From NCBI GenBank assembly GCA_964019335.1, contig OZ025677.1:248001-312000 (forward strand): a DNA stretch of 64,000 bases. The letters are read 5' to 3'. The translations under genes and the position numbers were made by a program. Under the pieces are notes generated by a model. The model did not search any database. It had not been told where the DNA came from and worked only from the letters and a program-made list of their open reading frames with translations. Positions 4,664 to 64,000 of this stretch are shown one piece after another. The stretch's first letter is position 1. Each line of letters begins with the position of its first letter. This DNA is from Diplonema japonicum (taxonomy: Eukaryota > Protista > Euglenozoa: Diplonemea).

Positions 4664-6235
4664 ATGGACACCCGCGCAGTGTGTGTGCTGCTCACGTTAT
4701 TGCTATGCGTGATACTTACCTCTCTGTGCTACGGCAGAGTCAACCCGGTTGTGATTATTGCATCAAAGGAGGACCTTCCTTGCAGTAAAGAAAGAAAAAC
4801 AGTACAAGATAACAACGCCCTGCAAACCCTGCCAGATGAAGGAGATTATTCGAGTTTAGAAGATTCGGAAGTACGGATTAAAAAAAAAAGTTCCTGGTTC
4901 CTCGGGACATGCACTGCCACCAAGAGCAGCGGTGCCTGGATCCGCGAGTGGATCGAACTCCAAATTGCCGTCGGCGTGGACCACGTGTGGGTCGCAGATG
5001 ACAACCCTGCCAACAGCACCGACATCACGACAGGAGTTCTGAAGCACTACGAGCGCCTTGGCTACGTCACCATCATCCCCCCACCGGACCTGAACCACAC
5101 TGGGTGCAGGCAGATTTCGGGCGTTGATGGCAGACACAACTGTGCCCCTGTGAAGCACTGCTTCGAGCATGCCTCACCCTATGTGAAGTGGCTCCTCTTC
5201 GCCGACACCGACGAGTTCATCTTCCCCCACAACGGCTGCTCTCTGAAGGAGCACATCAAGAACCACTGCAACCCTGATGCTACACAGATTTTCGTGAGGT
5301 GGGAGAGGTTCGGGACAAGTAATATCGAACAACACCCTAATGGCTTGATGCTTGAGAACTTCCTCACTTCAGGAGGCATGTGCGAGAAGCAGTTCGAGGG
5401 AATCTGTGGCAGGATGCCTTACAGCAACTGCCCTGAGTGCAGGCACTCGAAGGTGATCTACAACACGGAGTGTGCGAAAGTGGAACATGCTGGGTGGATC
5501 CACTGGCCTGTGAACACCACCGACTGGAAGGCTAAAACACTGCGCGAGTACCGAATTAGGGACTGGGTGCAATCGGAAGGGGAACATGCAAACTGGAAAA
5601 GCAAACAGTGCGAATACACTGGAATGAGAGAAGCAGGCGTGCAGTGCAACAAGTGGGTGCAGGAGGGTGGTGGGTCGAAGAGGCCGAAGGAGTACACACC
5701 CGACTGCTGCACGGCAGGGATAGGGTACAACCATTACGGGACGAAGTCGAGGCAGTACTATGAGAGGAAGCAGGCGAACAAGAACGAGAACATGAGAGGG
5801 TACAGGACGCCGCTGGACAGGATCGACTCGAACAACGTGCTGTCGTTCTCTGCGTTGAAGTTCTTGAGGGCCGTGCGGAGGAGGTTCATCGGGATGGGGG
5901 TTCCGGTATCGGACAATGTAGGCTTCGTGGAGGTTGCGCAGGAGACATGTTTCTTTGAATCAAACTTTGCGTACACAGCCACGGAGAGCACGCAGGCGGG
6001 AAACGTGGAGGGTGTGCATACAATGGAGGAGTGCTGCCAGGCGTGCTTTATGGTGGAGATGTGCAAGGCCTTCACACTCAGCAGCGGGGTGTGCAGTCTC
6101 TTCATCGGCAGTAAAACCATCCCTGGGACCGTTCTGAGGGACAACCCTTACCAACTGCATGCCAACAGGTCATGGGTGCTGCGCGATGTGTCAGGCATAC
6201 CCCTGCGGGAGGGCGAGTGTAAAGCAGGGCAGTAG
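4664..6235 (+). CDS. GT-PAN paralog 1: type II membrane GT92/GT2-like glycosyltransferase with PAN/Apple domain, intronless
   Basis: ATG at 4664 followed by a TM anchor. Motifs EWIELQIAVGVDHVWVADDN, WLLFADTDEF, WERFG, NHYGTKS and C-terminal ECCxAC..MCKAFT..C..SGIP. The junction reads uninterrupted SWFLG. Confidence 0.85.
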   Translation: MDTRAVCVLLTLLLCVILTSLCYGRVNPVVIIASKEDLPCSKERKTVQDNNALQTLPDEGDYSSLEDSEVRIKKKSSWFLGTCTATKSSGAWIREWIELQIAVGVDHVWVADDNPANSTDITTGVLKHYERLGYVTIIPPPDLNHTGCRQISGVDGRHNCAPVKHCFEHASPYVKWLLFADTDEFIFPHNGCSLKEHIKNHCNPDATQIFVRWERFGTSNIEQHPNGLMLENFLTSGGMCEKQFEGICGRMPYSNCPECRHSKVIYNTECAKVEHAGWIHWPVNTTDWKAKTLREYRIRDWVQSEGEHANWKSKQCEYTGMREAGVQCNKWVQEGGGSKRPKEYTPDCCTAGIGYNHYGTKSRQYYERKQANKNENMRGYRTPLDRIDSNNVLSFSALKFLRAVRRRFIGMGVPVSDNVGFVEVAQETCFFESNFAYTATESTQAGNVEGVHTMEECCQACFMVEMCKAFTLSSGVCSLFIGSKTIPGTVLRDNPYQLHANRSWVLRDVSGIPLREGECKAGQ

Positions 6236-7254
6236 CTAGTCGGGCGGAAGATGATCTGTTTGCTGATCAATAAAGGACAGCCTAACAGCGGCCACAATGG
6301 CTTTGGGGGACCAATGCCACGTCATAGCGTCATAGAGAGTTCCAGGGAACTGGGCAAAACTTATTTGAATTATTCAAATAGTCCAAAAAGGGCAGGTTGC
6401 ATCAAACCATCACTCGATTTTGGACCCCCCCTATTTTTTTTCTTCTAAAAGGGGCAGCAAGACCTTTGGCCGGGTCTAGGTGCGTAACGACACCTCCCCT
6501 TAAGTTAAGCGAGTCATTTCAGGGAAGCCTGTCACCTGTCCAACAGACCTCTAACATGGATCGCGTTTGGCTTCGGCAAAAGAAAATGATGTCCCTACCG
6601 CGAGGAAACGGGGACCAGGCACCATGTACTTTATGGTACACTGGGCCGACTGTGGTAGTCGTACTGAGCACCATTATTCGACTTGTGTCATCTTGACGTT
6701 AAAAGATCGAAATTTTTCTTTTCCTTTCCAGCCCGGCTCCTGTGGACCATCTACCACGGCCATGTTTTACTACCAACATTAGTGACTCGTTGGTAACAAC
6801 TTTTTTTTCCCCTCTTTTTCTTCAGGAGTACCCCCATGCACACTGATATCTTATCTAGTTTCTTTTTCACCTACGAGACCACAGGGGCTTGAGGGGCTTC
6901 GGGGCGAAGCTTCACTAGGGTGTCGGTTGTCACATACTGCCGCATCTCATCCCAACGGCCTTCAAGAGGGGGACACGAGACCGCAAGAGCTAGAAGGACA
7001 TGGGTAATTTCATTATTTCACTCTCCTCATATTCACATTTTTACGCTACTTCTTTTTCTTTTATTTCCTTTCGCCGATAATCATATGAAGACACTCAGCT
7101 AAATATATCTTTTTTCTTCTCCTTTGGGTGGCAATCTCTTTCTAACCATTGCTAGTCGTGAATACTGCCTGCCAGACTCTTTGATAGGTCCTACTATTTC
7201 TTTATTCGGATCTAAATTCTTCCTCTTTCATGCATCTACTAAGTCACTCAGGAA

Positions 7255-8894
7255 ATGGGGGGCACAAAAGACAACGAAGGAATGAAATCGCTGAGAGCAG
7301 GCAGTGCTTTGTTCGTGATTCTGCTCTGTGCACTTGCAACAATGCTGTGGGGGCCTGGGTATGCCACCGGGACGAAGGTGTGCAAGAAAGCCGCGAAGCC
7401 CGAGCTAGTTGGGGTGCCAGAGAGCGAGCTTCTTTCCCATATGTACACGAAAGGAGAACATCTGAATATCGAGAATTCGAACAGGCGGATAAACAGCACC
7501 GGGCCTTGGTATGCTGCAATAAAAGAAAAAGAAGAAACACTCAACAAAAAAAAAGGTTTCTGGGAACATGTACTGCGACAAAAGGCAGCGGCGCCTGGAT
7601 GCGCGAGTGGATCGAACTCCAAATCGCCGTCGGCGTGGACCACGTGTGGGTCGCAGATGACAACCCCCGCAGCAGCCATGACACCACGACAAGCATCTTG
7701 AAGCATTATGAAAAGCTTGGCTACGTCACTATTATCCCCCCTCCCCCAGGCATGGGCTTTCCTGGGTGTGAACAGCTCGGGGGAATAGAAGGCAGACACC
7801 AGTGTGCCCCTGTGAAGCACTGTTTTATCCACGCTTCACCCCACGTGAAGTGGCTCCTCTTCGCCGACACCGATGAGTTCATCTTCCCCCACAACGGCTG
7901 CTCGGTTGCCGAGCATATTAGGAACCACTGCAACCCTGATGCCACACACATTTATGTGAAGTGGGAGAGGTTTGGGACGAGCGACATTGAACAGCACCCC
8001 AATGGCATGATGCTTGAGAACTTTCTCAGCTCAGGAGGCATGTGTGAGAAGCACTTCAACGGCCTTTGTGGGAGGATGCCATTTAGCATCTGCCCTGAGT
8101 GCAGGCACTCGAAGGTGATCTACAACACGGAGTGTGCGAAGGTGGAACATGCTGGGTGGATCCACTGGCCTGTGAACACCACCGACTGGAAAGCAGCTGA
8201 GATCTATGAGTACCAAACACGGACATGGGTCAAGTCGGAGGGGGCTGAGTCGCACTGGAAGAGCGAAGCATGTGTGTACTATGGGCTGCGGGATGATTCC
8301 GCGCGGTGCAATGCTTGGGCTATTGCTGGACGTGGGTCGAAAAATGGACAAAAGATACGTTATACCCCCGACTGCTGCACAGCAGGGATAGGGTACAACC
8401 ATTACGGGACGAAGTCGAGGCAGTACTATGAGAGGAAGCAGAGGAACAGGAGAACCTTCAAGAGAGGGTACAGGACGTCGCTGGACAGGATCGACTCGAA
8501 CAACGTGCTGTCGTTCTCAGTTCTGAAGTTCTTGAGGGCTGTGCGGAAGAGGTTTGCGGGGATGGGGGTTCCGGTGTCGGACAATGTGGACTTCGTGGAG
8601 CTGCCTGGTGGGAAGTCCTGCTTTACGGAGAAGAACTGGAAGTACACACCAACAGAGGACACAGCAACAGTGCAGACGAATGCGAGAACAATGGAAGAGT
8701 GCTGCCAGGTGTGCTTTGAGATGGAGATGTGCAAGGCCTTCACACTCAGCAGCGGGGTGTGCAGTCTCTTCATCGGCAGTAAAACCATCCCTGGGACCGT
8801 TCTGAGGGACAACCCTTACCAACTGCATGCCAACAGGTCATGGGTGCTGCGCGATGTGTCAGGCATACCCCTGCGGGAGGGCGAGTGCACCTAG
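7255..8894 (+). CDS. GT-PAN paralog 2 (exons 7255-7508, 7556-8894)
   Basis: Removing the GT..AG intron 7509-7555 (47 nt) joins the anchor/stem ORF to the catalytic ORF in frame and restores GPWFLG. Confidence 0.85.
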
Positions 8895-10685: not shown

Positions 10686-12252
10686 ATGAGGACACGGGTC
10701 AGTATGGGTGCCTTGTCGGGCCTGTTTGTTGTCTTGTTATTAGCTGCCTGGTCGCCCAGCTGCGAGCCCCCAGTGAAGCCTGTGTTCGATGGGCATTATG
10801 TAAGTCTTGAGAACTCAAAGATGCTGATAAAAAGGACGAGCCCTTGGTATGTTGGATAAAAGAAAAATAAAAATAAAAATAAAATATAAAAATAGGTTCC
10901 TCGGAACATGTACTGCGACAAAAGGCAGCGGCGCCTGGATGCGCGAGTGGATCGAACTCCAAATCGCCGTCGGCGTGGACCACGTGTGGGTCGCAGATGA
11001 CAACCCCCGCAGCAGCCATGATCCAACCAGCGGCATCCTGAAGCACTACGAGCGCCTTGGCTACGTCACCATCATCCCCCCTCCCAAGCTCACCCACCCC
11101 GGGTGCCAGCAACTATCTGGCCCTGATGGTGTTCACAACTGTGCCCCTGTGAAGCACTGCTTCGAGTACGCCTCACCCCATGTGAAGTGGCTCCTCTTCG
11201 CCGACACCGACGAGTTCATCTTCCCCCACAACGGCTGCTCTCTGAAGGAGCACATCAATTCCTCGTGCAACCCTAATGCCACACACATCTATGTGAAGTG
11301 GGAGAGGTTCGGGACAAGCGGCTTCGAGGCCCACCCCAATGGCTTGATGCTTGAGAACTTTCTCACCTCGGGAGGCACCTGCGAGAAGTTTTATCCTGGT
11401 TGTGGACAAAGCCCCTTCAGGAACTGCCCTGAGTGCAGGCACTCGAAGGTGATCTACAACACGGAGTGTGCAGCTTTGGAACATGCTGGGTTCATCCACT
11501 GGCCTGTGAACACCACTGACTGGAAGGCAGGTACTATATCTGAGTACAAGAAGAGACAGTGGGCGAAGTCTCCGGGGGATGGTGGGAACTGGAAGAAAGA
11601 TACTTGCGACTACACAGGGCTGGTACAGGACACCAGCAACTGCAATGCGTGGGCTATTGCTGGTGGTGGGTCAAGGAGGCCGAAGGAGTACACACCCGAC
11701 TGCTGCACGGGGGGTATTGGGTACAACCATTACGGGACGCAGTCGAGGCAGTACTATGAGAGGAAGCAGAAGAACAAGAAGGACAGCTTGAGGGGTTGGA
11801 GGGCGCCTTTGCATATCATTGATCTGAACGACGTGCTGTCCTTCTCGATGCTGAGATTTCTACGAGCTGTCAGGAAGAGGTTCATCGGGATGGGGGCACA
11901 GGTGTCGGACAATGTGGACTTCATTGACCTGCCTGGTGGGAAGTCGTGCTTTGTGGAGACGAACTTCGTGTACGGAGCAATGGATATGACTGAGACATAC
12001 GTTTATGAGGACGAGTTCAACACCACGAGGAAGTGCTGCATGGCGTGCCATGTGGTGGAGATGTGCAAAGCATTTACCTTTACCAACGAGACGTGCAGCC
12101 TCCTGATTGGCGCGAAGCATACCTTCAACGCGAGCATCGAAGACAACCAGTACCAGATCGATGCCAATAGATCGTGGTCACTACACGATGTGTCAGGCAT
12201 ACCTCTCAAGGAGGGCGAGTGTGTCCCCCGAACTCAGTACCGCCCGCCTTGA
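10686..12252 (+). CDS. GT-PAN paralog 3 (exons 10686-10846, 10896-12252)
   Basis: Exon 1 reads MRTRVSMGALSGLFVVLLLAAW...KRTSPW. Removing intron 10847-10895 (49 nt) restores the frame. Confidence 0.85.
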
Positions 12253-12944
12253 GCGAGAAAATACTGTCGATCTAGAAGACAAGGGGAGGAGGCCCTGCTA
12301 TCTCTTGAAGACTATGGGTGTGTTACTTTGTACACGTTTGCACACCGGAGGTCAGAAAAGAAAAGAAATGAAATGAAATGAAAAGAGGGTCAGGATTAGT
12401 CAGGCCGGAGAGGAAGAAAGGGGGGTATCTTTCTGTAATTTACATTTTTTTGTTATATGAAATCAAAAAAAAAAGGGGGGGTGTTTTCCACCAGTTAAAG
12501 TTTCCAAAACTTTTGATCATTCTTTCTTCTTTTTTTTACTTTTTTGAAAGAATTACTTTAAGCTTTGAAGGAGGAATAAAAAGGAGGTAAGAAAGTTGCG
12601 CAATTTATTTTCCCCTTCATTGCCCATGATGTAATTTTCTCAAGCAAGTTCGACAAATGCACTCAACTAAGGCGATAGGCTTATACCTTCTTTCTGTGTG
12701 AGCACGAGTGAGCCAGTTACCAAGAAGAGTCCTTGTCGCCAGCAGGTTTTGAGGGAGCGTGTGTAGCCTATCCTATTACTGAAGCGTTCCAGATCACCAA
12801 CACCACCGTGGTCCTAGGCTCATAAGAAATGCCCTGCTAGATCCCCTGCCGCACCCCTCGTTAGAATCAAGAAGTTGGGTAAGAGTGTGGCCCACGCTCT
12901 TGCAGAGGAACACGTCAACCTTGAAAATTCAGACAAAATTATCA

Positions 12945-13403
12945 TGCACCGGCACTAAGAGCAGCGGCGCCTGGATGCGCGAGTGGATCGAACTCCAAAT
13001 TGCCGTCGGCGTGGACCACGTGTGGGTCGCAGATGACAACCCTGCCAACAGCTCCGACATCACAACAGGAGTTCTGAAGCACCCCATACACAAACTGCCC
13101 TGAGTGCAGGCACTCGAAGGTGATCTACAACACGGAGTGTGCAAAGGCGGAACATGCTGGTTACATCCACTGCCTGTGAACACCACCGACTGGAAGCGTG
13201 GCGGCATACGCGAATATGAAAAAACGAAATGGGCGCAGTCCCCTGGGAAGGGTGCCCACTCGAAGTGCGTACGTATATTTCCTGCAAAGTAATGTACAAT
13301 GCAACTAGTGGGCGTTGAGGATAGGAGAACATCTACCACCTACATACCAACATGGGAACTTTATTATGTTGGGCATACCCTTACTGGAGGGGGTGCGTGG
13401 TGA
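12945..13403 (+). pseudogene. GT-PAN paralog 4, deleted and frameshifted pseudogene
   Basis: The CTGTKSSGAWMREW...VLKH block is fused directly to the PYTNCPECRHSK block at ~13082. There is a frameshift at HWP, and further deletions precede a GIPLLEG-like tail. Confidence 0.85.
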
Positions 13404-13808: not shown

Positions 13809-15549
13809 ATGAACATATCAAGCGCAGTGGGTGTGCTGCTAAGTGTAGTGCTGTGCGTGGTCCTTATCACAACGTGGGACAACGGCTGCGACCAAGATGG
13901 TGGAAAGGACGTAGATGCGAAGGCTCTGAAGGTGACGGAGAATGATGAAGGGCCTCTCATGCACTTGAGCGAAAAGGCAAAGATCCGTGACGAAATGATG
14001 CTGAAACAGAAGGTTGACGAGGCGCTCAGCAAGATGTCCGGTTCCAAACAGGGCGCGGCGCGGGATATCGAAGGGAAGCTCCTGAAAAGGGAGCTGAGCG
14101 ATGACAAGTACACCTATCCTGAGAACCAGTTGAAAATCCAGAAGAAAGGACCTTGGTATGCACACAGAAAAAAGAAGAAAAAAAGAACGAAAAAAAAGGT
14201 TTCTGGGAACGTGCACCGCCACAAAAGGCAGCGGTGCCTGGATGCGCGAGTGGATCGAACTCCAGCTCGCTGTTGGTGTGGACCACCTTTGGATTGCAGA
14301 TGACAACCCTGCCAGCAGCCACGACATCACCGCAGGCGTTCTGAAGTACTACGAGCGCCTTGGCTACGTCACCATCATCCCTGCACCGGGTCTAATGTAC
14401 CCTGGGTGCGAGCAGCTTTCGGGCCCTGACAATAGACACAACTGTGCCCCTGTGAAGCACTGCTTCGAGTACGCCTCACCCCATGTGAAGTGGCTCCTCT
14501 TCGCCGACTCAGACGAGTTCATCTTCCCCCACAACGGCTGCTCGGTTGCCGAGCATATCAAGAACCACTGCAACCCTGATGCCACGCACCTCTATGTGAA
14601 GTGGGAGAGGTTCGGGACAAGCGGCTTCGAGGCCCACCCCAATGGCATGATGCTTGAGAACATCCTCACCTCTGGGGGCACCTGCAAGATGAAGGGGTGC
14701 CGTCACATCCCGTACACGATCTGCCCTGAGTGCAGGCACTCGAAGGTGATCTACAACACGGAGTGTGCAAAGTTGGAACATGCTGGTTACATCCACTGGC
14801 CTGTGAACACCACCGACTGGAAGGAAGGCGGGCTATGGGAATACGAGAAGCTGAGGTGGGTGCAGTCCCCTGGACCAGATGCTGGATGGAAACAGAAGAA
14901 GTGCGCCTACACAGGGTACGTGGAAGATGCTGAGCTTTGCAATGCATGGGCGATCTCGGGGGGTGGGTCGAAGAGGCCGAAGGAGTACACACCCGACTGC
15001 TGCGCGGGTGGGTTGGGGTACAACCATTACGGGACGAAGTCGAAGCAGTTCTATATGAGGAAACAGTTGAACAAGAAGGACAGCAAGAGGGGTTGGAGGA
15101 CAGGGTTTGGGGGGATTAACTTGAACAACGTACTGTCGTTCTCAGTTCTGAAGTTCATGAGGGCGATGCGGAAGAGGTTCTCGGGGATGGGGGCACAGGT
15201 GTCGGACAACGTTGCCTTCGTTGACGTTGCTGACCAGAAGTCGTGCTTTGTGGAGACGAACTGGGTGTACACGGCAACCGAGACGACAAAGATGATGTAC
15301 TCGCTGAGCAGCAACACGACAGACGAGTGTTGCGAGGAATGCCACTCCACAAGCATGTGCAAGGCCTTCACCCTCGACTCTGGCCTGTGCAAGCTTCTCA
15401 TTGGCGCTACTACTGTGCCTTCGACGGACATCAGGGACAACGAGTACCACCTGCATGCTGAGAGAAGGTGGGATCTTGGGCAGATATCAGGCATACCGAT
15501 GAGGCAGGGAGAATGCTCTCTACCTGAACACGTAGGTGGTGTGCCTTAG
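13809..15549 (+). CDS. GT-PAN paralog 5 (exons 13809-14155, 14199-15549)
   Basis: Intron 14156-14198 (43 nt, GTATG..AAAAG); long charged stem; DSD motif. Confidence 0.85.
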
Positions 15550-20320: not shown

Positions 20321-21855
20321 ATGACATCAACGGCCTCGACCTTAGCCAACGTGACAGGCATCACGTTGGCGGTCGTGGTTATCTTGATGGTGGTGCTGAC
20401 ATGGGAGACAGACTGCAAGGTCCATGATGAGACAAGGTCCTTGGTATGGTACTTGGAAGAGAGAAAGAAAATGTTAATAATCAAAGGTTCCTCGGGACAT
20501 GTACTGGGACGAAGGGCAGCGGCGCCTGGATGCGCGAGTGGATCGAACTCCAAATCGCTGTCGGCGTGGACCACGTGTGGGTCGCAGATGACAACCCGTC
20601 CGGCGGCTTCGACATCACAACAAGTGTTCTGAAGCACTACGAGAAGCTTGGCTACGTCACCATCATCCCCCCTCCCAAGCTCACCCATCCTGGATGTATT
20701 CAAATCACTGGTGCTGACAATAGACACAACTGTGCCCCTGTGAAGCACTGCTTCGAGCATGCCTCACCCCATGTGAAGTGGCTCCTCTTCGCCGACACCG
20801 ACGAGTTCATCTTCCCCCACAACGGCTGCTCTCTGAAGGAGCACATCAAGAACCACTGCAACCCTGATGCCACACACATCTATGTGAAGTGGGAGAGGTT
20901 CGGGTCCAGCGGCTTTGAGACCCACCCCAATGGCATGATGCTTGAGAACTTCCTCAGCTCAGGAGGCACCTGCAAGCACAGAGGGTGCAGCCGCATCCCA
21001 TACACAAACTGCCCTGAGTGCAGGCACTCGAAGGTGATCTACAACACGGAGTGTGCGAAGGTGGAACATGCTGGCTTCATCCACTGGCCTGTGAACACCA
21101 CCGACTGGAAAGCAGGAGGCATCTGGGAGTACGAGAAAGTGCGGTGGATCCAGTCCCCTGGACCGGAAGCGCATTGGAAGAAGGACACATGCCACTACAC
21201 AGGGTTTGTGGAGGACAGTGAACGATGCAATGCATGGGCGAAGTTTGGTGGTGGGTCGCAGAGGCCGAAAGAGTACACACCCGACTGCTGCACGGCAGGG
21301 ATAGGGTACAACCATTACGGGACGAAGTCGAAGCAGTTCTATATGAGGAAACAGTTGAACAGAAGGGACAGCAAGAGGGGTTGGAGGACATCCTTTATTA
21401 GCATTGATCTGAACGAAGTGCTGTCGTTCTCAGTTCTGAAGTTCATAAGGGCGCTGAGAACGAGGTTCGTTTCCCTGGGGGCACAGGTGTCCGACAACGT
21501 GGACTTCGTGGACCTTGAGGATGGCTCAGCATGCTTCTTGGAGAACAACTTCAGGTACGGGCCGCAGGAGACGACAGTCATGGAATTCATACCCCCTATC
21601 AACACAACAAAGCTGTGCTGTCAGAAGTGCTTCAAAACAAATATGTGCAAGGCTTTCACCTTCGATCATGGTGCTTGCTATCTTTTCATAGGTGCGACAA
21701 CAGTTCCGGGCACTGCCATCAGGGACAACGAGTACCACCTCCCTGCCAACAGGACATGGGAGATGCGTGTTCAGTCTGGCATACCCTTCCGGCAAGGGGA
21801 GTGTGCGGTCTCTCGTGGTGGCGGGGCCAACTGGTTCCTATGGAAAAGAAACTAA
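20321..21855 (+). CDS. GT-PAN paralog 6, very short stem (probable intron 20449-20486)
   Basis: Exon 1 reads MTSTASTLANVTGITLAVVVILMVVLTW... The ancestral donor at 20444 is out of frame, while the donor at 20449 restores W-F-L-G. The catalytic and PAN ORF is intact. Confidence 0.7.
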
Positions 21856-22529: not shown

Positions 22530-24108
22530 ATGAGTTCTACAAATGTTGTGGTGGTTCTCATCACTAGCATGGTAGGGTTCCTGGTTTTATCTTCGTGGGG
22601 AGGGTGCTCCAAGAGTACGGTGCAAGAGGAACTGACGGAAAAGAAAGAACCGAAACTGTTCGTGGGTCTGCAGACGAAAGCTGACGAGGACTATTCGTAC
22701 CCCAAGGACACCAATAAGATACAGAGGAAGGGACCTTGGTATGGATAAAAAAGCTCAATCAGAACAACCAAATAGGTTCCTCGGAACATGCACCGGCACA
22801 AAAGGTAGTGGCGCCTGGATGCGCGAGTGGATCGAACTCCAGCTCGCTGTCGGCGTGGACCACCTTTGGATCGCAGATGACAACCCCAAAGGCAGCACCG
22901 ACATCACGACAGGAGTTCTGCAGTACTACGAAACGCTTGGCTACGTCACCATCATCCCCCGCCCAAACCTTACCCATCCTGGATGCATACAGACCAAAGG
23001 CCCAAACGGTGTTCACAACTGTGCCCCTGTGAAGCACTGCTTCGAGTACGCCTCACCCCATGTGAAGTGGCTCCTCTTCGCCGACACCGACGAGTTCATC
23101 TTCCCCCACAACGGCTGCTCGGTTGCCGAGCACATCAGAAATCACTGCAACCCTGATGCCACACATATTTACCTAAAGTGGGAGCGGTTTGGATCCAGCG
23201 GCTTCGATACCCACCCCAATGGCATGATGCTTGAGAACCTCCTCACCTCTGGGGGCACCTGCAAGATGAAGGGATGCCGTAATATCCCGTACACGATCTG
23301 CCCTGAGTGCAGGCACTCGAAGGTGATCTACAACACGGAGTGTGCGAAGTTGGAACATGCTGGTTGGATCCACTGGCCTGTGAACACCACCGACTGGAAA
23401 GCAGGAGGCATCCACGAGTATGACAAATGGAAGTGGATCCAGTCACCTGGACCGGAAGCGCATTGGAAGAAGGACACATGCCACTACACAGGGTTTGTGG
23501 AGGACACCAACAAGTGCAACGCATGGGTGACAACAGGGGGCGGGGCGCAGAGGCCGAGGAAGTACACACCCGACTGCTGCACGGGGGGTATTGGGTACAA
23601 CCATTACGGGACGAAGTCGAAGCAGTTTTGGGTGCGAAAGCAAGCGAACAAGAATACCTTCAAAAGGGGTTGGAGGACGCCCTTCAATAGCATAGATCTG
23701 AACCACGTGCTGTCGTTTTCTGTACTGAAATTCATGAGGGTACTGAGGAAGAGGTTCGCAGGGCTGGGGGCACAGGTTTCGGACAACAATGCCTTCGTTA
23801 ATTTAGATGGTGGGAGGTCGTGCTTTGTGGAGACAAACTGGAGGTACCAACCGACCGAGACGACCAAAGCGAGGAGGGGCAGCAGCAACACAACAAAGGC
23901 GTGCTGCACTGAGTGCTTCAACGAACACCAGTGCAAGGCATTCACCTTCAACCGAGACACTTGCACACTCTTCATTAGTGGCAACACAGTACCCTTGACC
24001 AGCATAAAGGACAATGAGTACCACTTGCATGTGAACAGGACGTGGACCTTTGGATACCTGTCAGGGATCCCCATGCAGCAAGGGGAGTGCTCCATCCAGC
24101 GGAAGTAG
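22530..24108 (+). CDS. GT-PAN paralog 7 (exons 22530-22738, 22776-24108)
   Basis: Removing intron 22739-22775 (37 nt) restores GPWFLG. Confidence 0.85.
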
Positions 24109-45222: not shown

Positions 45223-45972
45223 ATGAACGCCTCGAACGCCAGCGGCATCTTCCTTGCTGCCTTGATCTGCCTTCTGAGCTCCTGGGTCACACACCGACAC
45301 CACGACTGTGTACTCGAAGAACTGGAACAGCTTCCTTTACCTGACGAGAAGCAAAAGGAGGGCCCACGGCAAGGACGAAGAAGAGCCACGTGAATAACAT
45401 CAGAAAACGACTTGGGTCTTGACGTGAGCCAGAACTTCGAGAACTCTAACAAAGCGATGAAAACAAAGGCCCATGGTATGCCACATGTACATCTACAGCA
45501 CACAAACAGGTTCCTCGGGACATGCACCGGCACCAAGAGCAGCGGCGTCTGGATGCGCGAATGTCCAAATTGCCGTCGGCGTGGACCACGTGTGGGTCGC
45601 AGATGACAACCCTGCCAACAGCACCGACATCACGACAGGAGTTCTGAAGCACTACGAGCGCCTTGGCTACGTCACCATCGTTCCCCCTCCCAAGCTCACC
45701 CGTGCTTTGTGGAGAAGCACTTCGTGTACAGGCCGACCGAGAACTCTGTGATGCTGCCAAGCAACGTCTGCGAAGGCCTGCTGTGCGGAGTGCCACAGAA
45801 CAAGAATGTGCAAAGCATTCACTTTTGCTTCTAAACTTGTGAGCCTATCATTGGGGGGACAAGGATACCCAGGACACCTATTAAGCACAACACGTACCAG
45901 ATACACGCAAGCAGAAAGTGGTCCCTCCGCCAGTTGTCCGGCATCCTGCTGAAGGAGGGCGAGGCTGCATGA
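45223..45972 (+). pseudogene. GT-PAN paralog 12, pseudogene
   Basis: Stop at 45391. Intron 45476-45509 (34 nt) is nearly identical to the paralog 8 intron. Small deletion at REW. A large deletion at ~45700 fuses PPKLT to the CFVE (PAN) block. Confidence 0.88.
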
Positions 45973-47020: not shown

Positions 47021-48595
47021 ATGTCCAGCCTCCTGCGCATAGGGAGCATTCTGTGCTTGACTGCGCTGTGCATATGGCTCTCCGTGAGGGGTGGTAGGAA
47101 GGACACGCCGGAAGGGAAGACCACCACCAGTGCGGAGGCCATTGGCACACCTCCCAAACGCACCAGTAAGACTGTCGCTGAGGATGACCTGCTACTGGCT
47201 GCTGAAGGAGACTTTGTGAGCCTTGAAAACACTCAATCAATGATTAAAAGAAAGGGCCCCTGGTTCCTCGGGACATGCACCGGCACCAAGAGCAGCGGCG
47301 CCTGGATGCGCGAGTGGATCGAACTCCAAATTGCCGTCGGCGTGGACCACGTGTGGGTCGCAGATGACAACCCTGCCAACAGCTCCGACATCACGACAGG
47401 AGTTCTGAAGCACTACGAGCGCCTTGGCTACGTCACCATCATCCCCCCTCCCAAGCTCACGCATCCTGGATGCAAGCAGATTTCTGGCCCCGATGGCAGA
47501 CACAACTGTGCCCCTGTGAAGCACTGCTTCGAGCATGCCTCACCTCATGTGAAGTGGCTCCTCTTCGCCGACACCGACGAGTTCATCTTCCCCCACAACG
47601 GCTGCTCTCTGAAGGAGCACATCAAGAACCACTGCAACCCTGATGCCACACACATCTATGTTAGGTGGGAGAGGTTCGGGACAAGTCACTTCGAGACCCA
47701 CCCCAATGGTCTGATGACTGAGAACTTCCTCAGCTCAGGGGGGATTTGCGAGACGCACCGTGGGTGCGGAAAGAAGCCGTTCCACAACTGCCCTGAGTGC
47801 AGGCACTCGAAGGTGATCTACAACACGGAGTGTGCGAAGGTGGAACATGCTGGTTTCATCCACTGGCCTGTGAACACCACCGACTGGAAGGCGGGAACCC
47901 TACCTGAGTACAGGAAACGAGAGTGGGTGAAGTCAAACGGGACAGAGGCTCATTGGAAGAAAGCAACATGCAACTATGCTGGCCTGGCTGAGGACAGCGA
48001 ACAGTGCAATGATTGGGCGATGAAAGGGGGCGGGTCGAAGAGGCCGAGGGAGTACACACCCGACTGCTGCACGGGGGGTATTGGGTACAACCATTACGGG
48101 ACGCAGTCGAGGCAGTACTATGAGAGGAAGCAGATGAATAAAGGTGAGAACATGAGGGGTTGGCGAACATTTCTGGGGGGCCTTGATCTGAATGACGTGC
48201 TGTCGTTCTCAGTTCTGAAGTTCGTGAGGGCTGTGCGGAAGAGGTTCATCGGGATGGGGGCACAGGTGTCGGACAATGTGGACTTCATTGACCTGCCTGG
48301 TGGGAAGTCGTGCTTTGTGGAAACGAACTTCGCGTATTCTGCCACCTCATCAACAGTGGCACTCCTGAAGATTAGTGTACCGAACGCACAGGCGTGCTGT
48401 GATGAGTGCCATGTCACCCCCATGTGCAAGGCTTTTACTTACTCACGAGGGACATCATGCAACCTTCTCATTGGATCGAAGACTATACCACATACTGAAC
48501 TCAGGGACAACCCCTACCAGCTGCACGCAAGGAGGTCATGGGAGATCAACCGTGTGTCGGGCATCCCGCTGAAAGATGATGAATGTGTTGGATGA
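47021..48595 (+). CDS. GT-PAN paralog 13, intronless
   Basis: 524-aa ORF with continuous KGPWFLG junction. Confidence 0.9.
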   Translation: MSSLLRIGSILCLTALCIWLSVRGGRKDTPEGKTTTSAEAIGTPPKRTSKTVAEDDLLLAAEGDFVSLENTQSMIKRKGPWFLGTCTGTKSSGAWMREWIELQIAVGVDHVWVADDNPANSSDITTGVLKHYERLGYVTIIPPPKLTHPGCKQISGPDGRHNCAPVKHCFEHASPHVKWLLFADTDEFIFPHNGCSLKEHIKNHCNPDATHIYVRWERFGTSHFETHPNGLMTENFLSSGGICETHRGCGKKPFHNCPECRHSKVIYNTECAKVEHAGFIHWPVNTTDWKAGTLPEYRKREWVKSNGTEAHWKKATCNYAGLAEDSEQCNDWAMKGGGSKRPREYTPDCCTGGIGYNHYGTQSRQYYERKQMNKGENMRGWRTFLGGLDLNDVLSFSVLKFVRAVRKRFIGMGAQVSDNVDFIDLPGGKSCFVETNFAYSATSSTVALLKISVPNAQACCDECHVTPMCKAFTYSRGTSCNLLIGSKTIPHTELRDNPYQLHARRSWEINRVSGIPLKDDECVG

Positions 48596-50664: not shown

Positions 50665-50769
50665 CTGTAAAACAAAAATCACCGGAAGATAAAATGTCCG
50701 GAAGAAAAAAATATCCGGATGTTTCGGCGGTCCGGATATTTTGTCTTCCGGTGGATTTTTGTTTTACAG
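50665..50769. mobile_element. TA-flanked foldback micro-MITE
   Basis: TA-CTGTAAAACAAAAATCACCGGAAGA … TCTTCCGGTGGATTTTTGTTTTACAG-TA. Confidence 0.7.
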
Positions 50770-50779
50770 TATTTATTAA

Positions 50780-52963: not shown

Positions 52964-52967
52964 TTAA

Positions 52968-54407: not shown

Positions 54408-56228
54408 ATGGCGCTGAACATGACAAGTGTTCTCAGTGTCATGCTGATGACGCTACTCGTAGTACTGGTCACCACCACCTACGGGCGTGGCACACGCTCG
54501 CAGCCTGACGTTGAAGCCCAAACCTCACTGGACAAAAAGACAGACAAGCCGTGCCCCACGTTGCCCCCTACATTACCGCCTAAGGTTGTGAAGGTTCCTG
54601 TCCCTGTGAAGGTTCCTGTTCCTGTGAAAGTTCCTGTCCCTATGAAAGTTCCTGTCCCTGTGAAGGTTCCTGTCCCTGTGAAAGTTCCTGTCCCTATGAA
54701 AGTTCCTGTCCCTATGAAAGTTCCTGTCCCTGTGAAGGTCCCTGTGAAGAAGTCTGGGGTCAACACGCCCGAAACAATGAACGAAAAGGAAATAGTACCT
54801 GGGGTGGAGCCTAAGTTCGTGCGCCTCAGTAGCGTAGACACCATCATCAAGAGGGATGGCCCCTGGTTCCTCGGGGCCTGCACTGCCACGAAGGACAGCG
54901 GCGCTTGGATGCGCGAGTGGCTCGAACTTCAAATTGCCGTCGGCATCGACCACGTGTGGGTCGCAGATGACAACAAAGACAACAGCACCGACATCTCGAA
55001 GTCTGTCCTCGATCACTACGTCCGCCTTGGCTACGTCACCATCATCCCCCCCCCGAGTATGACCTACCCCGGCTGTCAGCAGTTCGAGGGGCCCGAGGGA
55101 AGACACGACTGTGCCCCTGTGAAGCACTGCTTCGTGCATGCTGCACCCCACGTAAAGTGGCTCCTCTTCTCCGACACTGACGAGTTCATCTTCCCCCACA
55201 ACGGCTGCTCCCTTGCTGAGCACATCAAGAACACATGTAACCCTGATGCCACACACATCTATGTTAGGTGGGAGAGGTTCGGGTCCAGCGGTTTCGAGAT
55301 CCATCCGTCCGGCATGATGCTTGAGAACTTCCTCACCTCTGGGGGCACCTGCAGGCATGCGAAGTGCAGAACGGCCCCGTACACAAACTGCCCTGAGTGC
55401 AGGCACTCAAAGGTGATCTACAACACGGAGTGTGCGAAGGTGGAACATGCTGGGTGGATCCACTGGCCTGTGAACACCACCGACTGGAAGGCCCGTGGGA
55501 TCAGAGAGTACACCAAGAGGAGGTGGGTGCACTCTGATGGTCCTGGTGCGCACTGGAAGTCCGACAAGTGTTCGTACAGGGGGCTGATCGAGGACAGCGA
55601 CATATGCAACAAGTGGGCCATCAGTGGGGGCGGGTCGAAGAGGCCGAAGCAGTTCACACCCGACTGCTGCACGGGGGGTATTGGGTACAACCATTACGGG
55701 ACGCAGTCGAGGCAGTACTATGAGAGGAAGCAGAAGAACGTGGCGACGAACAAGAGGGGTTGGAGGACAGGGTTCGGGAGCATTGACAACAATGATGTTA
55801 TCTCGTTCTCAGTTCTGAAGTTCATGCGCGCGATGAGGAGGAGGTTCAAGGCACTGGGGACGCAGGTGTCTGACAACGTGGCCTTCGTGGATGTGCCTGG
55901 GAATGACTGGAAGGCCCGTGGGAAGTCGTGCTTCGTCGAGACAAACTGGAAGTACGGAGGAAAAGCGACCACAGTTACGAGGACAGTCAGTGTGGACACT
56001 GTGGAACAGTGCTGTCTGGTGTGCCACGAAACCAGCATGTGCAAGGCCTTCACCTTCACGAAGCTGAAGAAGTGCGACCTGTTCGTTGGCTCCACCACAG
56101 TCCCGGGCACTGACATTAGGGACAACGAGTACCACCTCCCTGCCAACAGGACATGGTCCTTAGGCTACAAGTCGGGGATCGCCATGCGGGAGGGTGAGTG
56201 TGCCTTCACCGCCACTAACCTCTCCTGA
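54408..56228 (+). CDS. GT-PAN paralog 14, intronless, KVPVPV-repeat stem
   Basis: ATG at 54408 (MALNMTSVLSV…) with continuous DGPWFLG junction. Confidence 0.88.
   Translation: MALNMTSVLSVMLMTLLVVLVTTTYGRGTRSQPDVEAQTSLDKKTDKPCPTLPPTLPPKVVKVPVPVKVPVPVKVPVPMKVPVPVKVPVPVKVPVPMKVPVPMKVPVPVKVPVKKSGVNTPETMNEKEIVPGVEPKFVRLSSVDTIIKRDGPWFLGACTATKDSGAWMREWLELQIAVGIDHVWVADDNKDNSTDISKSVLDHYVRLGYVTIIPPPSMTYPGCQQFEGPEGRHDCAPVKHCFVHAAPHVKWLLFSDTDEFIFPHNGCSLAEHIKNTCNPDATHIYVRWERFGSSGFEIHPSGMMLENFLTSGGTCRHAKCRTAPYTNCPECRHSKVIYNTECAKVEHAGWIHWPVNTTDWKARGIREYTKRRWVHSDGPGAHWKSDKCSYRGLIEDSDICNKWAISGGGSKRPKQFTPDCCTGGIGYNHYGTQSRQYYERKQKNVATNKRGWRTGFGSIDNNDVISFSVLKFMRAMRRRFKALGTQVSDNVAFVDVPGNDWKARGKSCFVETNWKYGGKATTVTRTVSVDTVEQCCLVCHETSMCKAFTFTKLKKCDLFVGSTTVPGTDIRDNEYHLPANRTWSLGYKSGIAMREGECAFTATNLS
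54591..54746 (+). repeat. Coding 18-bp minisatellite: (KVPVP[V/M])x8 plus a partial unit
   Basis: aa[ag]gttcctgt[ct]cct[ga]tg units. Confidence 0.95.
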
Positions 56229-58377: not shown

Positions 58378-59997
58378 ATGAACATGTCAAGTGTGTTTGG
58401 CGTCATGCTCCTGACGGTTGCTGCGGTGCTGCTGACGACGTACGGGAGGAGCACGAAGCCAGTTGACACGCAGGTAGCCTGCCCTCCGAAGCTCCCTCAG
58501 ACAGGGAACCCTCAGACAGGAAACCCTCAGACAGGGAACGGGATGGTTAAGGAAACTGATATGCTGCCTGGTGTCATGGAGGGCGACTTTGTGACACTTC
58601 ACGGAACGGATAACACGGTGATTAAAAGAAAAGGCCCCTGGTTCCTCGGGGCCTGCACTGCCACGAAGGACAGCGGCGCTTGGATACGCGAGTGGCTCGA
58701 ACTTCAAATTGCCGTCGGCATCGACCACGTGTGGGTCGCAGATGACAACAAAGACAACAGCACCGACATCTCGAAGTCTGTCCTCGATCACTACGTCCGC
58801 CTTGGCTACGTCACCATCATCCCCCCCCCGAGTATGACCTACCCCGGCTGTCAGCAGTTCGAGGGGCCCGAGGGAAGACACGACTGTGCCCCTGTGAAGC
58901 ACTGCTTCGTGCATGCTGCACCCCACGTAAAGTGGCTCCTCTTCTCCGACACTGACGAGTTCATCTTCCCCCACAACGGCTGCTCCCTTGCTGAGCACAT
59001 CAAGAACACATGTAACCCTGATGCCACACACATCTATGTTAGGTGGGAGAGGTTCGGGTCCAGCGGTTTCGAGGCTCACCCCAATGGCATGATGCTTGAG
59101 AACTTCCTCTCCTCTGGGGGCACCTGCAAGATGAAGGGGTGCCGCGAGACCCCGTACACGAACTGCCCTGAGTGCAGGCACTCAAAGGTGATCTACAACA
59201 CGGAGTGTGCGAAAGAGGAACATGCTGGGTGGATCCACTGGCCTGTGAACACCACCGACTGGAAGGCCCGTGGGATCCCTGAGTACACCAAGAGGAGGTG
59301 GGTGCACTCTGATGGTCCTGGTGCGCACTGGAAACATGAGAAGTGCGAGTACACGGGACTGCTCGAGGACAGTGAGAGGTGCAACACATGGGCGAAGAGC
59401 GGTGGTGGGTCGCAGAGGCCGAAGCAGTTCACACCCGACTGCTGCACGGGGGGTATTGGGTACAACCATTACGGGACGCAGTCGAGGCAGTACTATGAGA
59501 GGAAGCAGAGGAACGTGGCAACCAGCAAGAGGGGTTGGAGGACAGGGTTCGGGGGGATTGACAACAAAGGTGTTATCTCGTTCTCAGTTCTGAAGTTCAT
59601 GCGCGCGATGAGGAGGAGGTTCAAGGCACTGGGGACGCAGGTGTCTGACAACGTGGCCTTCGTGGATGTGGGCGAAGGAAAGTCGTGCTTCGTTGAGCAG
59701 AACTTCGTGTACGCGGCAGTCGAGAGTACAGAAATGAGGTACGGGGCAGCTGCCAACAACAGTGATGAGTGCTGTCTGGCGTGCCACAACACCAGCATGT
59801 GCAAGGCCTTCACCTTCACGAAGCTGAAGAGGTGCAACCTTCTCATTGGCTCCACTAAAGTCCCTGGCACCGAGATCAGGGACAACGAGTACCACCTCCC
59901 TGCCAACAGGACATGGTCCCTCAAGCATGCCTCCGGTATCCCAATGCGGGAGGGAGAGTGCGTGTTCCCTGGACACGTCCCTAGCCCGTCGAAATAG
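58378..59997 (+). CDS. GT-PAN paralog 15, intronless, (PQTGN)x3 stem
   Basis: 539-aa ORF. Confidence 0.9.
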   Translation: MNMSSVFGVMLLTVAAVLLTTYGRSTKPVDTQVACPPKLPQTGNPQTGNPQTGNGMVKETDMLPGVMEGDFVTLHGTDNTVIKRKGPWFLGACTATKDSGAWIREWLELQIAVGIDHVWVADDNKDNSTDISKSVLDHYVRLGYVTIIPPPSMTYPGCQQFEGPEGRHDCAPVKHCFVHAAPHVKWLLFSDTDEFIFPHNGCSLAEHIKNTCNPDATHIYVRWERFGSSGFEAHPNGMMLENFLSSGGTCKMKGCRETPYTNCPECRHSKVIYNTECAKEEHAGWIHWPVNTTDWKARGIPEYTKRRWVHSDGPGAHWKHEKCEYTGLLEDSERCNTWAKSGGGSQRPKQFTPDCCTGGIGYNHYGTQSRQYYERKQRNVATSKRGWRTGFGGIDNKGVISFSVLKFMRAMRRRFKALGTQVSDNVAFVDVGEGKSCFVEQNFVYAAVESTEMRYGAAANNSDECCLACHNTSMCKAFTFTKLKRCNLLIGSTKVPGTEIRDNEYHLPANRTWSLKHASGIPMREGECVFPGHVPSPSK

Positions 59998-61750: not shown

Positions 61751-62301
61751 AAAATGCCATGCTTGGAAATGTTTTTCTCTGTTTCTCCCCCCCCCCCTTT
61801 TTTTCTCTTTTGATCTTTTCGAAACCTTTTATTATTTCTTTGTTCATTCCCCTTTCCCTACCTATAAGGTAGTACTCAAAAGAAAAAGAGTAAGTTTAGA
61901 TAATCAACAGAAATAGAAGGGGAAAAAAAAAGAAGAAGATATGCCAAAATAAAGAGCAACTACAGTAACACAGGTATCCCTTCAGGATCCAGAGGGGAGT
62001 AGAACTAAGTGAAACCACCACAAGTTGGTGTGCACTTAGCTCGCCTGATGTACCTATCCAGTCTTTTTTTCCTCTTCCCCCCCCCCCAATATATTTTTGT
62101 TTCTCCATCTTCCTTTGCTCTTTTTCTACCACCACCCCCATCTTTTTCTCTCTGTTTTTTTCTTTGCTTTCTTTCTTTTCCTTTTCCTTTCCCCCTTTTT
62201 TTTTATATCGATCTTCTTTTTCTTCCTCCTAAAGATATTAAATGCGCAACTCACAGAACTCATTTTCCTCCCGTCGTTTCATCGTCAAGAAAAGAACAGA
62301 A

Positions 62302-64000
62302 ATGAACGGCGCCAACTTGGCTAGCCTGCTCTTCGTTGTTCTTATTTGTGTCATTGCACATAATTCTTGGCAAAAGACTACAGTGCTCGTTGTAGACAGT
62401 GCCGAGTCAAGATTAAAAGAACTGCTACATACCTCTGCTCCTGCCTCCACCACTGCCCCCACTCCGACCCCCACAGCGGCCCCCACTCCGGCTCCCACAG
62501 CGGCTCCCACTCCGACCCCCACAGCGGCCCCCACTCCGACTCCCACAGCGGCCCCCACTCCGACTCCCACAGCGACCCCCACGACGGTCCCCACCCCTGC
62601 CCCCCCTACACGCCTTCAGAATTCAGTTCAGATTATACGACCAAAGGGGCCTTGGTATGTTCTGATTGCAAATAAAGGGAGGGGTTATTATTATTTAAAA
62701 AAAAAAGGTTCCTCGGGACATGCACCGGCACCAAGAGCAGCGGCGCCTGGATGCGCGAGTGGATCGAACTCCAAATTGCCGTCGGCGTGGACCACGTGTG
62801 GGTCGCAGATGATAACAAGCCCAACAGCACCGACATCACCACCAATGTTCTGAAGCACTACGTCCGCCTTGGCTACGTCACCATCATACCAGTTGCTGCG
62901 ACAGCCTACCCTGGGTGCGAACAGCTCTCCGGCCCTGATGGTAGACACAACTGTGCCCCTGTGAAGCACTGCTTCGCGCATGCCTCACCCCATGTGAAGT
63001 GGCTCCTCTTCGCCGACACCGACGAGTTCATCTTCCCCCACAACGGCTGCTCTCTGAAGGAGCACATCAAGAACCACTGCAACCCTGATGCCACACACAT
63101 CTATGTTAGGTGGGAGAGGTTCGGGACAAGCGGCTTTGAAGCCCACCCAGCTGGTCTGATGCTTGAGAACTTCCTCAGCTCAGGGGGGGTTTGCGAGAAG
63201 TTCTATGATGGATCCTGCGGGAAATGGCCTTTCACAAACTGCCCTGAGTGCAGGCACTCGAAGGTGATCTACAACACGGAGTGTGCGAAGGTGGAACATG
63301 CTGGGTGGATCCACTGGCCTGTGAACACCACCGACTGGAAGGCCCGTGGGATCAGAGAGTACACCAAGAGGAGGTGGGTGCACTCTGATGGTCCTGGTGC
63401 GCACTGGAAAAAAGGTGTTTGTAACTATACCGGGCTAAGAGAAGATAGCCGGCGGTGCAATGATTGGGCGATGAAAGGGGGCGGGTCGCAGAGGCCGAGG
63501 GAGTACACACCCGACTGCTGCACGGGGGGTATTGGGTACAACCATTACGGGACGCAGTCGAGGCAGTACTATGAGAGGAAGCAGATGAGTAGGAACACGA
63601 ACAAGAGGGGTTGGAGGACTGCTATTCATGGCATTGATCTGAACAACGTGTTGTCGTTCTCAATTCTAAAGTTCTTGAGGGCTGTGCGGAGGAGGTTCAT
63701 CGGGATGGGGGTGCAGGTGTCGGACAATGTGAAGTTCATGGAGCTGGGCGACGGGAAGTCGTGCTTCTTGGAGCAGAACTTCGTGTACAAAGCTACAGAC
63801 AAGACAACGACGGTGGCTGCGCCTAATGCAACTTCATCCTTTCAGTGCTGCTCTGCCTGCCACGAAGCTGAGATGTGCAAGGCCTTTACAGTATCTGATG
63901 GCTTGTGCACGCTCTTAATTGGTGCTGAGACCATCGTAAACACCGATTACAGAGATAACCCGTACCACCTAGCTGCCCAAAGAAAGTGGTCCATAAAGGA
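62302..64000 (+). CDS. GT-PAN paralog 16 (exon 62302-62654, intron 62655-62707, 3' end beyond window), mucin-like P/T/A stem
   Basis: Removing the 53-nt GTATG..AAAAG intron restores GPWFLG. 24-bp PTPTPTAA repeats at ~62450-62607. Confidence 0.85.

Follow-up and report, generated by a model that had tools for sequence, protein, structure and literature searches.

Gene conversion in a tandem array of predicted GT92-PAN glycosyltransferase genes of Diplonema japonicum: alike catalytic blocks, copy-specific variable parts

A 64,000-nucleotide stretch of the Diplonema japonicum genome (C30:248001-312000, hereafter the window, in whose numbering positions are given unless a scaffold is named) carries a tandem array of genes predicted to encode GT92-type glycosyltransferases (GT) that end in a PAN/apple domain. 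The array comprises 17 units, all on one strand and inside a run of genes on the same strand. A first-pass annotation of this DNA took it for a diversification system, in which acceptor-binding loops, PAN domains and stems are recombined combinatorially into a variable repertoire of surface glycans. The explanation that we consider probable is a different one: a GT92-PAN family specific to this lineage, whose copies undergo ordinary interlocus gene conversion; combinatorial shuffling of cassettes is not supported. In the aligned copies, conversion mainly homogenises these genes rather than diversifying them.

A tblastn search with one copy returned 16 units between 4664 and the end of the window, every one on the plus strand; 14 are full-length and two are fragments (Table 1). 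Searching the whole 62.5-Mb, 132-contig assembly added an intact copy 17 just past the window (C30:316353-317822), as well as more than 15 further paralogues clustered on scaffolds C37, C34, C93, C25, C41 and C68. Thirteen of the 17 units appear to be fully intact. Copy 9 is probably a pseudoenzyme, copy 6 has an ambiguous 5' end and two units are relics. The earlier count of 16 genes holds as a numbering, in that copies 1-16 are real units, but copies 4 and 12 are internally deleted and frameshifted relics, and the array continues past base 64000 with copy 17. Copy 16 itself ends about 43 nt beyond that base and was completed from the adjoining sequence. The start methionine of copy 8 was assigned from transcript P0002. 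In copy 6 an upstream open reading frame (ORF) with a signal anchor (MTSTAS..., from about 20321) is shifted by one nucleotide relative to the frame of the GPW splice junction, and the 5' end of this copy is possibly broken.

The copies share long identical tracts in spite of their overall divergence: nucleotide identity of the core is 71-81% between pairs and 89% between copies 14 and 15. The longest maximal exact repeats measure 387 nt (copies 14/15), 187 nt (8/13), 166 nt (1/2), 151 nt (11/13) and 149 nt (14/16), and dozens reach at least 80 nt. Both relics take part, copy 4 with a 107-nt exact tract in common with copies 8 and 13, copy 12 with a 116-nt exact tract in common with copy 1. 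The matches listed in the first-pass annotation could all be reproduced. The PAN ends of copies 1 and 2 (6054-6219 and 8722-8887) are identical at 166 of 166 positions, and copies 14 and 15 differ by one mismatch in 441 nt (54858-55298 vs 58633-59073), within which lies their longest exact run. Copy 16 matches copy 14 at 73 of 73 positions (63337-63409 and 55486-55558), as part of a true tract of 149 nt (55410-55558 = 63261-63409), and matches copy 13 at 33 of 33 positions (63456-63488 and 48005-48037). Of the shared peptides, DLNHTGCRQ of copies 1 and 9 is encoded with no mismatch in 27 nt and TKSKQFYMRKQLN of copies 5 and 6 with none in 39 nt; AGTLPEYRKREWVKS of copies 11 and 13 shows one mismatch in 45 nt, and GGTCKMKGCR of copies 5, 7 and 15 one to two in 30 nt. 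The constant blocks that had been named were found in every copy.

The mosaic ancestry suggested by these tracts is borne out by formal tests. In a GENECONV-like permutation over 739 polymorphic sites, 59 of 105 pairs reached the minimum p value and 68 of 105 were significant after global correction. The pairwise homoplasy index (PHI) fell below all 200 permutations (z = -7.5). When maximum likelihood trees of seven segments were compared by approximately unbiased (AU) tests, each segment rejected every other segment's tree, at p values between 0.034 and 1e-81, most of them below 0.01, and four of the seven rejected the whole-gene tree. A single congruent tree across all segments would have spoken against mosaicism; the trees are incongruent, and the claim survives. 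So does the proposal that segmental conversion is anchored in the constant blocks: the tracts sit in these blocks or start from them. Sharing drops weakly with distance along the array (Mantel p ~0.03).

What these exchanges do to the genes is seen from the synonymous differences (pS, the proportion of synonymous sites that differ). In the constant blocks, array copies differ from one another by a pS of 0.24 and from outside paralogues by 0.57, 81% of positions lie in exact tracts of at least 45 nt, and the G+C content of third codon positions (GC3) is 0.78. The corresponding values are 0.56, 0.68, 34% and 0.71 for the variable parts of the GT domain and 0.68, 0.77, 9% and 0.67 for the PAN domain, where most of the 9% comes from the single tract of copies 1 and 2 and only one PAN half-domain is shared. 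In windows of 15 codons, pS is 0.13-0.25 in constant blocks and 0.67-0.82 in variable segments and PAN. The constant blocks vary freely at silent sites outside the array, with pS of 0.57 between array copies and paralogues on C37 and C34 and 0.67 between two such paralogues, and so their low pS within the array, down to 0.01-0.07 in some pairs, reflects homogenisation and not selection on silent sites. The higher GC3 of the converted blocks is compatible with GC-biased conversion.

The variable parts tell of little exchange. Cut into segments of 30 codons and grouped at 93% identity or more, the 15 copies fall into 14-15 types in variable segments and into 1-6 types in constant blocks. The statement that variable segments are shared between different pairs of copies is right in a minority of cases, namely where tracts spill into neighbouring loops (copies 14/16, 11/13, 1/9 and 6/7, and the PAN half of 1/2), but nearly every copy has its own version. 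Stems are alike only weakly, at ~30-60% identity in tblastn searches with N-terminal pieces. With 14-15 types among 15 copies, 34% of variable GT and 9% of PAN positions in shared tracts and stems of this kind, the combinatorial recombination of loops, PAN domains and stems that had been proposed finds no support.

We observe no sign of diversifying selection either. The largest pN/pS (nonsynonymous over synonymous) in any 15-codon window is 0.74, and Jukes-Cantor-corrected omega is 0.19 in constant, 0.30 in semi-constant and 0.32 in variable GT segments and 0.25 in PAN. A Suzuki-Gojobori-type count on segment-specific trees gave significant purifying selection at 92 codons and class ratios of 0.21-0.46. 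The per-site comparison suggested earlier as a check thus returned, at low power, no excess of amino-acid change in any window or at any of 441 codons. The variable parts appear to be relaxed and yet constrained, evolving neither neutrally nor in a detectably adaptive manner.

Each intact gene is predicted to encode a type II membrane protein made up of a signal anchor, a stem, a GT92 domain of GT-A fold and the C-terminal PAN/apple domain. A cytoplasmic tail of 0-27 residues (mostly <10) precedes the anchor, and the copy-specific, often low-complexity stem that follows is 31-132 residues long and in several copies consists of Pro/Thr/Val repeats. Anchors were found in 13 of the 14 gene models of the window as hydrophobic 19-mers near the N-terminus (Kyte-Doolittle score 1.75-2.64). 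The GT domain carries a DTDEF motif (DxD) and a Cys-rich insertion at about residues 240-350. Pfam assigns it to PF01697 at E 1e-16 to 1e-18, with 59-66 bits against a cut-off of 23 (copies 1, 13 and 14), and the same family is recorded for the relatives. The C-terminal domain scores at threshold with PAN_1 (20.9-23.8 bits vs a cut-off of 21.4) and 17.7-26.9 bits vs 27 with PAN_4; the relatives behave alike.

The structural model of copy 13 agrees with these assignments. AlphaFold2 run with an alignment of 30 sequences gave a model with a predicted local distance difference test score (pLDDT) of 86, a predicted template modelling score of 0.82 and a helix at residues 3-23; run from the single sequence it was unusable (pLDDT 32.6). 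Among solved structures, poplar GalS1 ranks first in Foldseek (E 8e-7, probability 1.0) and in VIA, which superposed it with Z 15.7 over 226 residues at a root mean square deviation (rmsd) of 3.4 Å, generic GT-A folds reaching about 11. Residues 417-519 of the model fit onto positions 105-194 of a copper oxidase from Colletotrichum (6stx), a stretch that we take to be its PAN module, with Z 10.3 over 88 residues at 2.5 Å rmsd. In phmmer the C-terminal domain matches the Sarcocystis 'microneme antigen L2' (2yil) at E 5.8e-5, presumably the galactose-binding lectin SML-2. The earlier description of these products as GT-A/DxD type II membrane proteins with a C-terminal PAN domain is upheld, by the PF01697 and GalS1 matches, the DxD motif, the signal anchors and the PAN fold together. 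Leads from the ESM Atlas were weak (scores up to 0.85; diatom and ascomycete clusters) and were not used.

Key residues are conserved in nearly all copies. D184, D186 and E187 do not vary among 30 members of the family, the DxD motif is present in 14 of the 15 array copies, 22 cysteines are kept in all 15 aligned copies, and C459, C463, C469 and C480 of the PAN core are at least 90% conserved. Thirteen of the 15 keep every family-invariant residue. Copy 8 has P191A at one such position. Copy 9 has KAD for DTD (D184 changed) and CEEC for CPEC, and a 9-residue deletion takes out the invariant R379; it is a probable pseudoenzyme, yet it is transcribed. By analogy with GT92 enzymes, the proteins are probably inverting glycosyltransferases of the secretory pathway, most likely of the galactosyl type. 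The PAN domain may bind glycans or proteins, whether acceptor or product, and direct each paralogue to a different acceptor, much as the lectin domain would in GalNAc-transferases and the carbohydrate-binding module in GalS1.

A short intron adds to the picture. Eleven units (copies 2, 3, 5, 6, 7, 8, 9, 11, 12, 16 and 17) carry an intron of 32-53 nt with GTATG...AG ends, in phase 2 within the Trp codon of GPW|FLGTCT; it is exactly missing from copies 1, 10, 13, 14 and 15. In the whole-gene tree these five are not monophyletic, and four of the five have the junction sequence in common. The pattern fits, and so suggests, one intron loss that then spread by conversion; a cDNA intermediate would be an alternative route to the intronless state. 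Splicing is seen in transcript protein P0001, whose N-terminus is exon 1 of copy 11 joined to exon 2, and in copy 8, where a contig of run X6 joins 26069 to 26102 and omits 32 nt with GT..AG ends. No spliced joint was found for the introns of copies 6 and 7 in the contigs of four runs. The array introns fit the norm of the species, a median of 41 nt with a G/GTATG 5' splice site and an A-rich tract before the 3' site (PMC12621601). Spliced readings were used for N-termini and for comparison with transcript proteins; database searches were run with intronless copies or single exons.

Several copies are transcribed. Over all copy-specific windows, the D. japonicum transcript P0191 (EukProt) is identical to the spliced reading of copy 11. 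The Trinity isoforms of a single 'gene', DN137_c0_g1, switch among copies 8, 9, 11, 15 and 17 only inside blocks common to several copies, which is the signature of chimeras in a de Bruijn graph. The copy-specific parts of these five copies all occur in isoforms from the transcriptome of one culture, and at least five copies are therefore transcribed in it; at the level of contigs and for this one culture, this argues against a single expressed site.

The following mechanism would account for these observations. The duplicates would be old, as PAN synonymous differences are near saturation. Short-tract interlocus conversion would repeatedly re-homogenise the conserved catalytic blocks, where identity suffices for recombination, and an occasional tract would extend into an adjoining variable loop and leave one of the few shared cassettes. 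Most variable loops and PAN domains, and all stems, would stay copy-specific under relaxed purifying selection. The array would then give the cell many fixed acceptor specificities and not a shuffling repertoire. A variable repertoire of surface glycans is plausible as a consequence of at least 15 different enzymes.

Some observations weigh against this explanation. Variable cassettes have moved between non-neighbouring copies (14/16, 11/13, 1/9, and the PAN half of 1/2), which makes some new combinations. Uneven rates along the gene can inflate the permutation test, on which, however, neither the AU tests nor the synonymous contrast depend. With 15 sequences, saturated synonymous sites and parsimony counting, the selection tests have low power, and episodic positive selection may have acted at a few loop sites. 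The N-terminal ~225 residues of transcript proteins P0003/P0192 (anchor, stem and first GT half) match no copy in the primary assembly; they may stem from an alternate-haplotype copy, from a copy absent from the assembly or from a Trinity chimera with an unassembled gene. The C-terminal 60% of the same proteins equals copy 15. Finally, 'galactosyltransferase' is a label borrowed from distant members of GT92, with which the array proteins share 13-17% identity.

The strongest competitor is a selected diversification system, in which conversion among the copies and the relics is maintained because it reshuffles acceptor loops and PAN domains. The outcome would be strain- or clone-specific surface glycans that might, for instance, help to evade viruses, predators or symbionts. 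In its favour are DNA-identical variable cassettes in non-sister copies, relics that share exact tracts of 107-116 nt with live genes, a transcript whose N-terminal half is missing from the assembly, and an array rich in distinct PAN domains and loops. We nevertheless consider it unlikely. The 14-15 cassette types in 15 copies leave no small reusable set, sharing is concentrated in the constant blocks and reaches only 9% of PAN positions, omega stays below 0.5 everywhere with none of 441 codons in excess, and transcripts of at least five copies occur in one culture, each copy being a whole gene that has an anchor and a stem of its own. There is no dedicated machinery nearby, the sole candidate being a piggyBac-type transposase in one spacer. 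Measured against known cassette-type systems, such as the mosaics of variant surface glycoprotein (VSG) genes and the conversion of immunoglobulin pseudo-V segments, the array has no limited, reused set of cassettes and, within the low power of the tests, no positive selection on its variable parts; combinatorial shuffling appears to fail three defining features.

It could also be argued that there was no conversion at all, the constant blocks being alike through selection on protein or codon usage and the cassettes being retained ancestral states. The blocks do hold the DxD motif and other family-invariant residues, and GC3 is high throughout, but their silent sites vary outside the array (0.57 and 0.67, vs 0.24 within), exact tracts of 100-387 nt join copies that are ~75% identical, segment trees reject each other and PHI is significant. 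Purifying selection alone is contradicted by the synonymous contrast, the tracts, AU and PHI, and we regard this explanation as very improbable. We give still less credence to an assembly artefact, in which the identical blocks would be chimeric joins or collapsed repeats. Short-read graphs do mis-join these genes, as the chimeric Trinity isoforms attest. The genome of strain YPF1604, however, was assembled from PacBio HiFi reads and Hi-C (62.3 Mb; 7.93 Gb in 8.4e5 reads, mean ~9.4 kb; PMC13598402). Because the mean is ~9.4 kb, one HiFi read spans two to three genes, and the shared tracts are at most 441 nt. Over 20401-26400, the contigs of four runs, drawn from three studies, agree letter for letter with the copy-specific parts, and P0191 matches copy 11 end to end. 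Chimeric assembly, which would have undone the case for shared blocks, is made very unlikely by the read length, the agreement of the four runs and P0191.

The family to which the array belongs seems so far to be found mainly in diplonemids. Among 1.8 billion representative proteins, 17 clusters match at E <= 1e-30, nearly all of them covering most of the GT-PAN length; they come from Diplonema, Rhynchopus, Artemidia and Namystynia, with a few contigs from ENA/Logan. More than 1,400 others match at E <= 0.001, and among the matches listed many cover the GT-A core only (~residues 80-240). The closest database proteins are D. japonicum Trinity ORFs of EukProt; next come transcripts of D. ambulator and 'hypothetical proteins' of D. 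papillatum. In a quick tree the 15 array copies form one clade (Shimodaira-Hasegawa-like approximate likelihood ratio test 98), sister to a single D. ambulator transcript. The array may accordingly be an expansion of the D. japonicum lineage, or its monophyly may have been kept by conversion. We also noted candidates with two GT92-PAN units in one open frame, C34:516395-519337 (1063 aa) and C93:255697-258432 (1049 aa), and the D. japonicum transcript ORF P0034 (990 aa) has a PAN match upstream of a second GT92 domain; these three look like natural double-module fusion genes of the same family.

Table 1. Units of the GT92-PAN array and other genes of the window (window positions)
Feature	Coordinates	Strand	Structure and remarks
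Adenylate/guanylate cyclase-domain gene	507..3017	+	PF00211 E 4.5e-29; directly upstream, marks the 5' edge of the array
Copy 1	4664..6235	+	Intronless; signal anchor aa 5-23, stem 55 aa; PF01697 E 5.5e-18, PAN_1 E 3e-4
Copy 2	7255..8894	+	Exon 1 7255-7508, GTATG..AG intron 7509-7555 (47 nt), exon 2 7556-8894
Copy 3	10686..12252	+	Exon 1 10686-10846, intron 10847-10895 (49 nt), exon 2 10896-12252
Copy 4	12942..13326	+	Relic: N-terminal GT piece joined to mid-GT piece; frameshift, stops
Copy 5	13809..15549	+	Exon 1 13809-14155, intron 14156-14198 (43 nt), exon 2 14199-15549
Copy 6	20321..21855	+	Intron 20444-20486; catalytic and PAN exon 20487-21855 intact
Copy 7	22530..24108	+	Exon 1 22530-22738, intron 22739-22775 (37 nt), exon 2 22776-24108
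Copy 8	25820..27441	+	Exon 1 25820-26070, intron 26071-26102 (32 nt), exon 2 26103-27441
Copy 9	30587..32210	+	Exon 1 30587-30861, intron 30862-30901 (40 nt), exon 2 30902-32210
Copy 10	33622..35184	+	Intronless
Copy 11	41626..43271	+	Exon 1 41626-41900, intron 41901-41932 (32 nt), exon 2 41933-43271
Copy 12	45379..45963	+	Relic: end of exon 1, intron 45476-45509, first ~60 GT codons, joined to PAN end; frameshifts, stops
Copy 13	47021..48595	+	Intronless; query for structure model and searches
piggyBac-type transposase ORF, 573 aa	51027..52748	-	PF13843 E 2.2e-59, full profile; in the spacer between copies 13 and 14
Copy 14	54408..56228	+	Intronless; likely start Met 54408 (ORF opens 54225); 132-aa stem with KVPVPV repeats
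Copy 15	58378..59997	+	Intronless; core 89% identical to copy 14
Copy 16	62302..64000	+	Exon 1 from ~62302, intron 62655-62707 (53 nt), exon 2 from 62708; Thr/Pro/Ala-rich stem

The surroundings of the array contain other genes and repeats. The cyclase-domain gene at its 5' edge combines a multi-pass hydrophobic N-terminal half with a class III cyclase domain. The transposase ORF, not a member of the GT92-PAN family, is apparently intact, lies antisense to the whole gene run and is flanked by palindromic matches at 50657-50777 and 52963-53129. A dispersed nuclear repeat of ~210 nt, resembling a short interspersed nuclear element or a miniature inverted-repeat transposable element, occurs in the spacers at 18882-19064, 19986-20203, 24328-24510, 30113-30305 and 46126-46386. 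A genome search gave 1,242 candidates for it at first look, the 40 that were scored being ~90% identical and placed on many scaffolds, and in each of the four runs its contig word-depth exceeds that of the flanks by a factor of 400-900. An Rfam scan of the whole window, this repeat included, gave no match, and Pfam searches with ten intergenic ORFs gave sub-threshold noise only. The spacers after copies 5 and 13 share an inverted element of ~0.8-1 kb (16006-16783 vs 49037-50051, 66-79% identical), with no Pfam domain in the ORFs there. Upstream of the window, ORFs flip from minus (228-237 kb) to plus (from 243 kb), which fits a divergent strand switch. A 200-N scaffold gap (C30:334837-335036) lies ~17 kb past copy 17, with other same-strand genes between it and the array. 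There are no TTAGGG/CCCTAA runs in C30:228001-248000 and 312001-342000, and a subtelomeric position of the array was not borne out.

Among characterized enzymes, the plant beta-1,4-galactan synthases GalS1/GALS (CAZy GT92; PDB 8d3t, 8d3z) share with the array proteins PF01697, the GT-A fold, the DxD motif and type II topology, and the GalS1 structure reportedly has an extra carbohydrate-binding module beside the catalytic domain, a modular build like that of the array proteins. They differ in sequence (13-17% identity), in lacking the C-terminal PAN domain and Cys-rich GT insertion of the array proteins, and in setting, which here is a protist with 30 or more such genes per genome. The animal GT92 enzymes, C. 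elegans GALT-1 and pigeon beta4GalT, are Golgi type II beta-1,4-galactosyltransferases that act on N-glycans and belong to the same CAZy/Pfam family; the likeness is one of description, and they are not known to us to carry a PAN domain. DUF23/GT92 genes are greatly expanded in C. elegans, in which, to our knowledge, no tandem array of conversion mosaics of this kind has been described. The GalNAc-transferases (GT27) are likewise type II GT-A enzymes with many paralogues and a C-terminal lectin module, ricin-type in their case, that steers substrate choice, and their structures are among the generic GT-A matches (Z 9-10). However, they belong to another GT family and their lectin is a beta-trefoil and not a PAN domain, so that the array is not a member of this group. 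The apicomplexan PAN/apple lectins (Sarcocystis 2yil) share sequence similarity and the PAN fold, but are stand-alone secreted adhesins, whereas the PAN domain of the array, a putative glycan binder, is fused to an enzyme.

As to the evolution of the array, the closest parallels are in kinetoplastids, whose GP63, amastin, mucin and trans-sialidase arrays evolve in concert or by mosaic conversion. These too are same-strand tandem arrays of euglenozoans, with short tracts and with homogenised blocks beside divergent patches. The present array differs in that its host is a free-living diplonemid, its products are predicted to be enzymes instead of surface antigens, and nothing points to silent donor archives or to expression-site control.

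The first-pass annotation did not recognise the GT92-PAN fusion family as described, and we too found no account of it in the searchable literature; its D. papillatum relatives are recorded only as 'hypothetical protein', and neither 'glycosyltransferase' nor 'GT92' occurs in the D. papillatum genome paper. What is new is the fusion of GT92 with a C-terminal PAN domain, at 30 or more genes per genome and in several diplonemid genera. A modular GT-A enzyme with a lectin module is not new as a design, and the mechanism of gene conversion is ordinary.

A bolder reading would make the array an evolvable locus for glycan specificity, in which recurrent short conversions, some of them with the relics and with copies missing from this haplotype, generate strain or haplotype variants, the diversity being maintained through selection by viruses, grazers or the bacterial endosymbionts of the cell, which read surface glycans. 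We hold this to be a speculative and rather improbable extension; if true, a free-living marine protist would possess, among its glycosyltransferases, a counterpart to contingency gene families. As a GT92-PAN family under ordinary conversion, the genes suggest that glycan synthesis has a layer as yet unexplored, with enzymes steered by a lectin module attached to them, and the array would offer a clean natural case of conversion and divergence splitting a gene between them, with the catalytic blocks homogenised while the regions of specificity escape.

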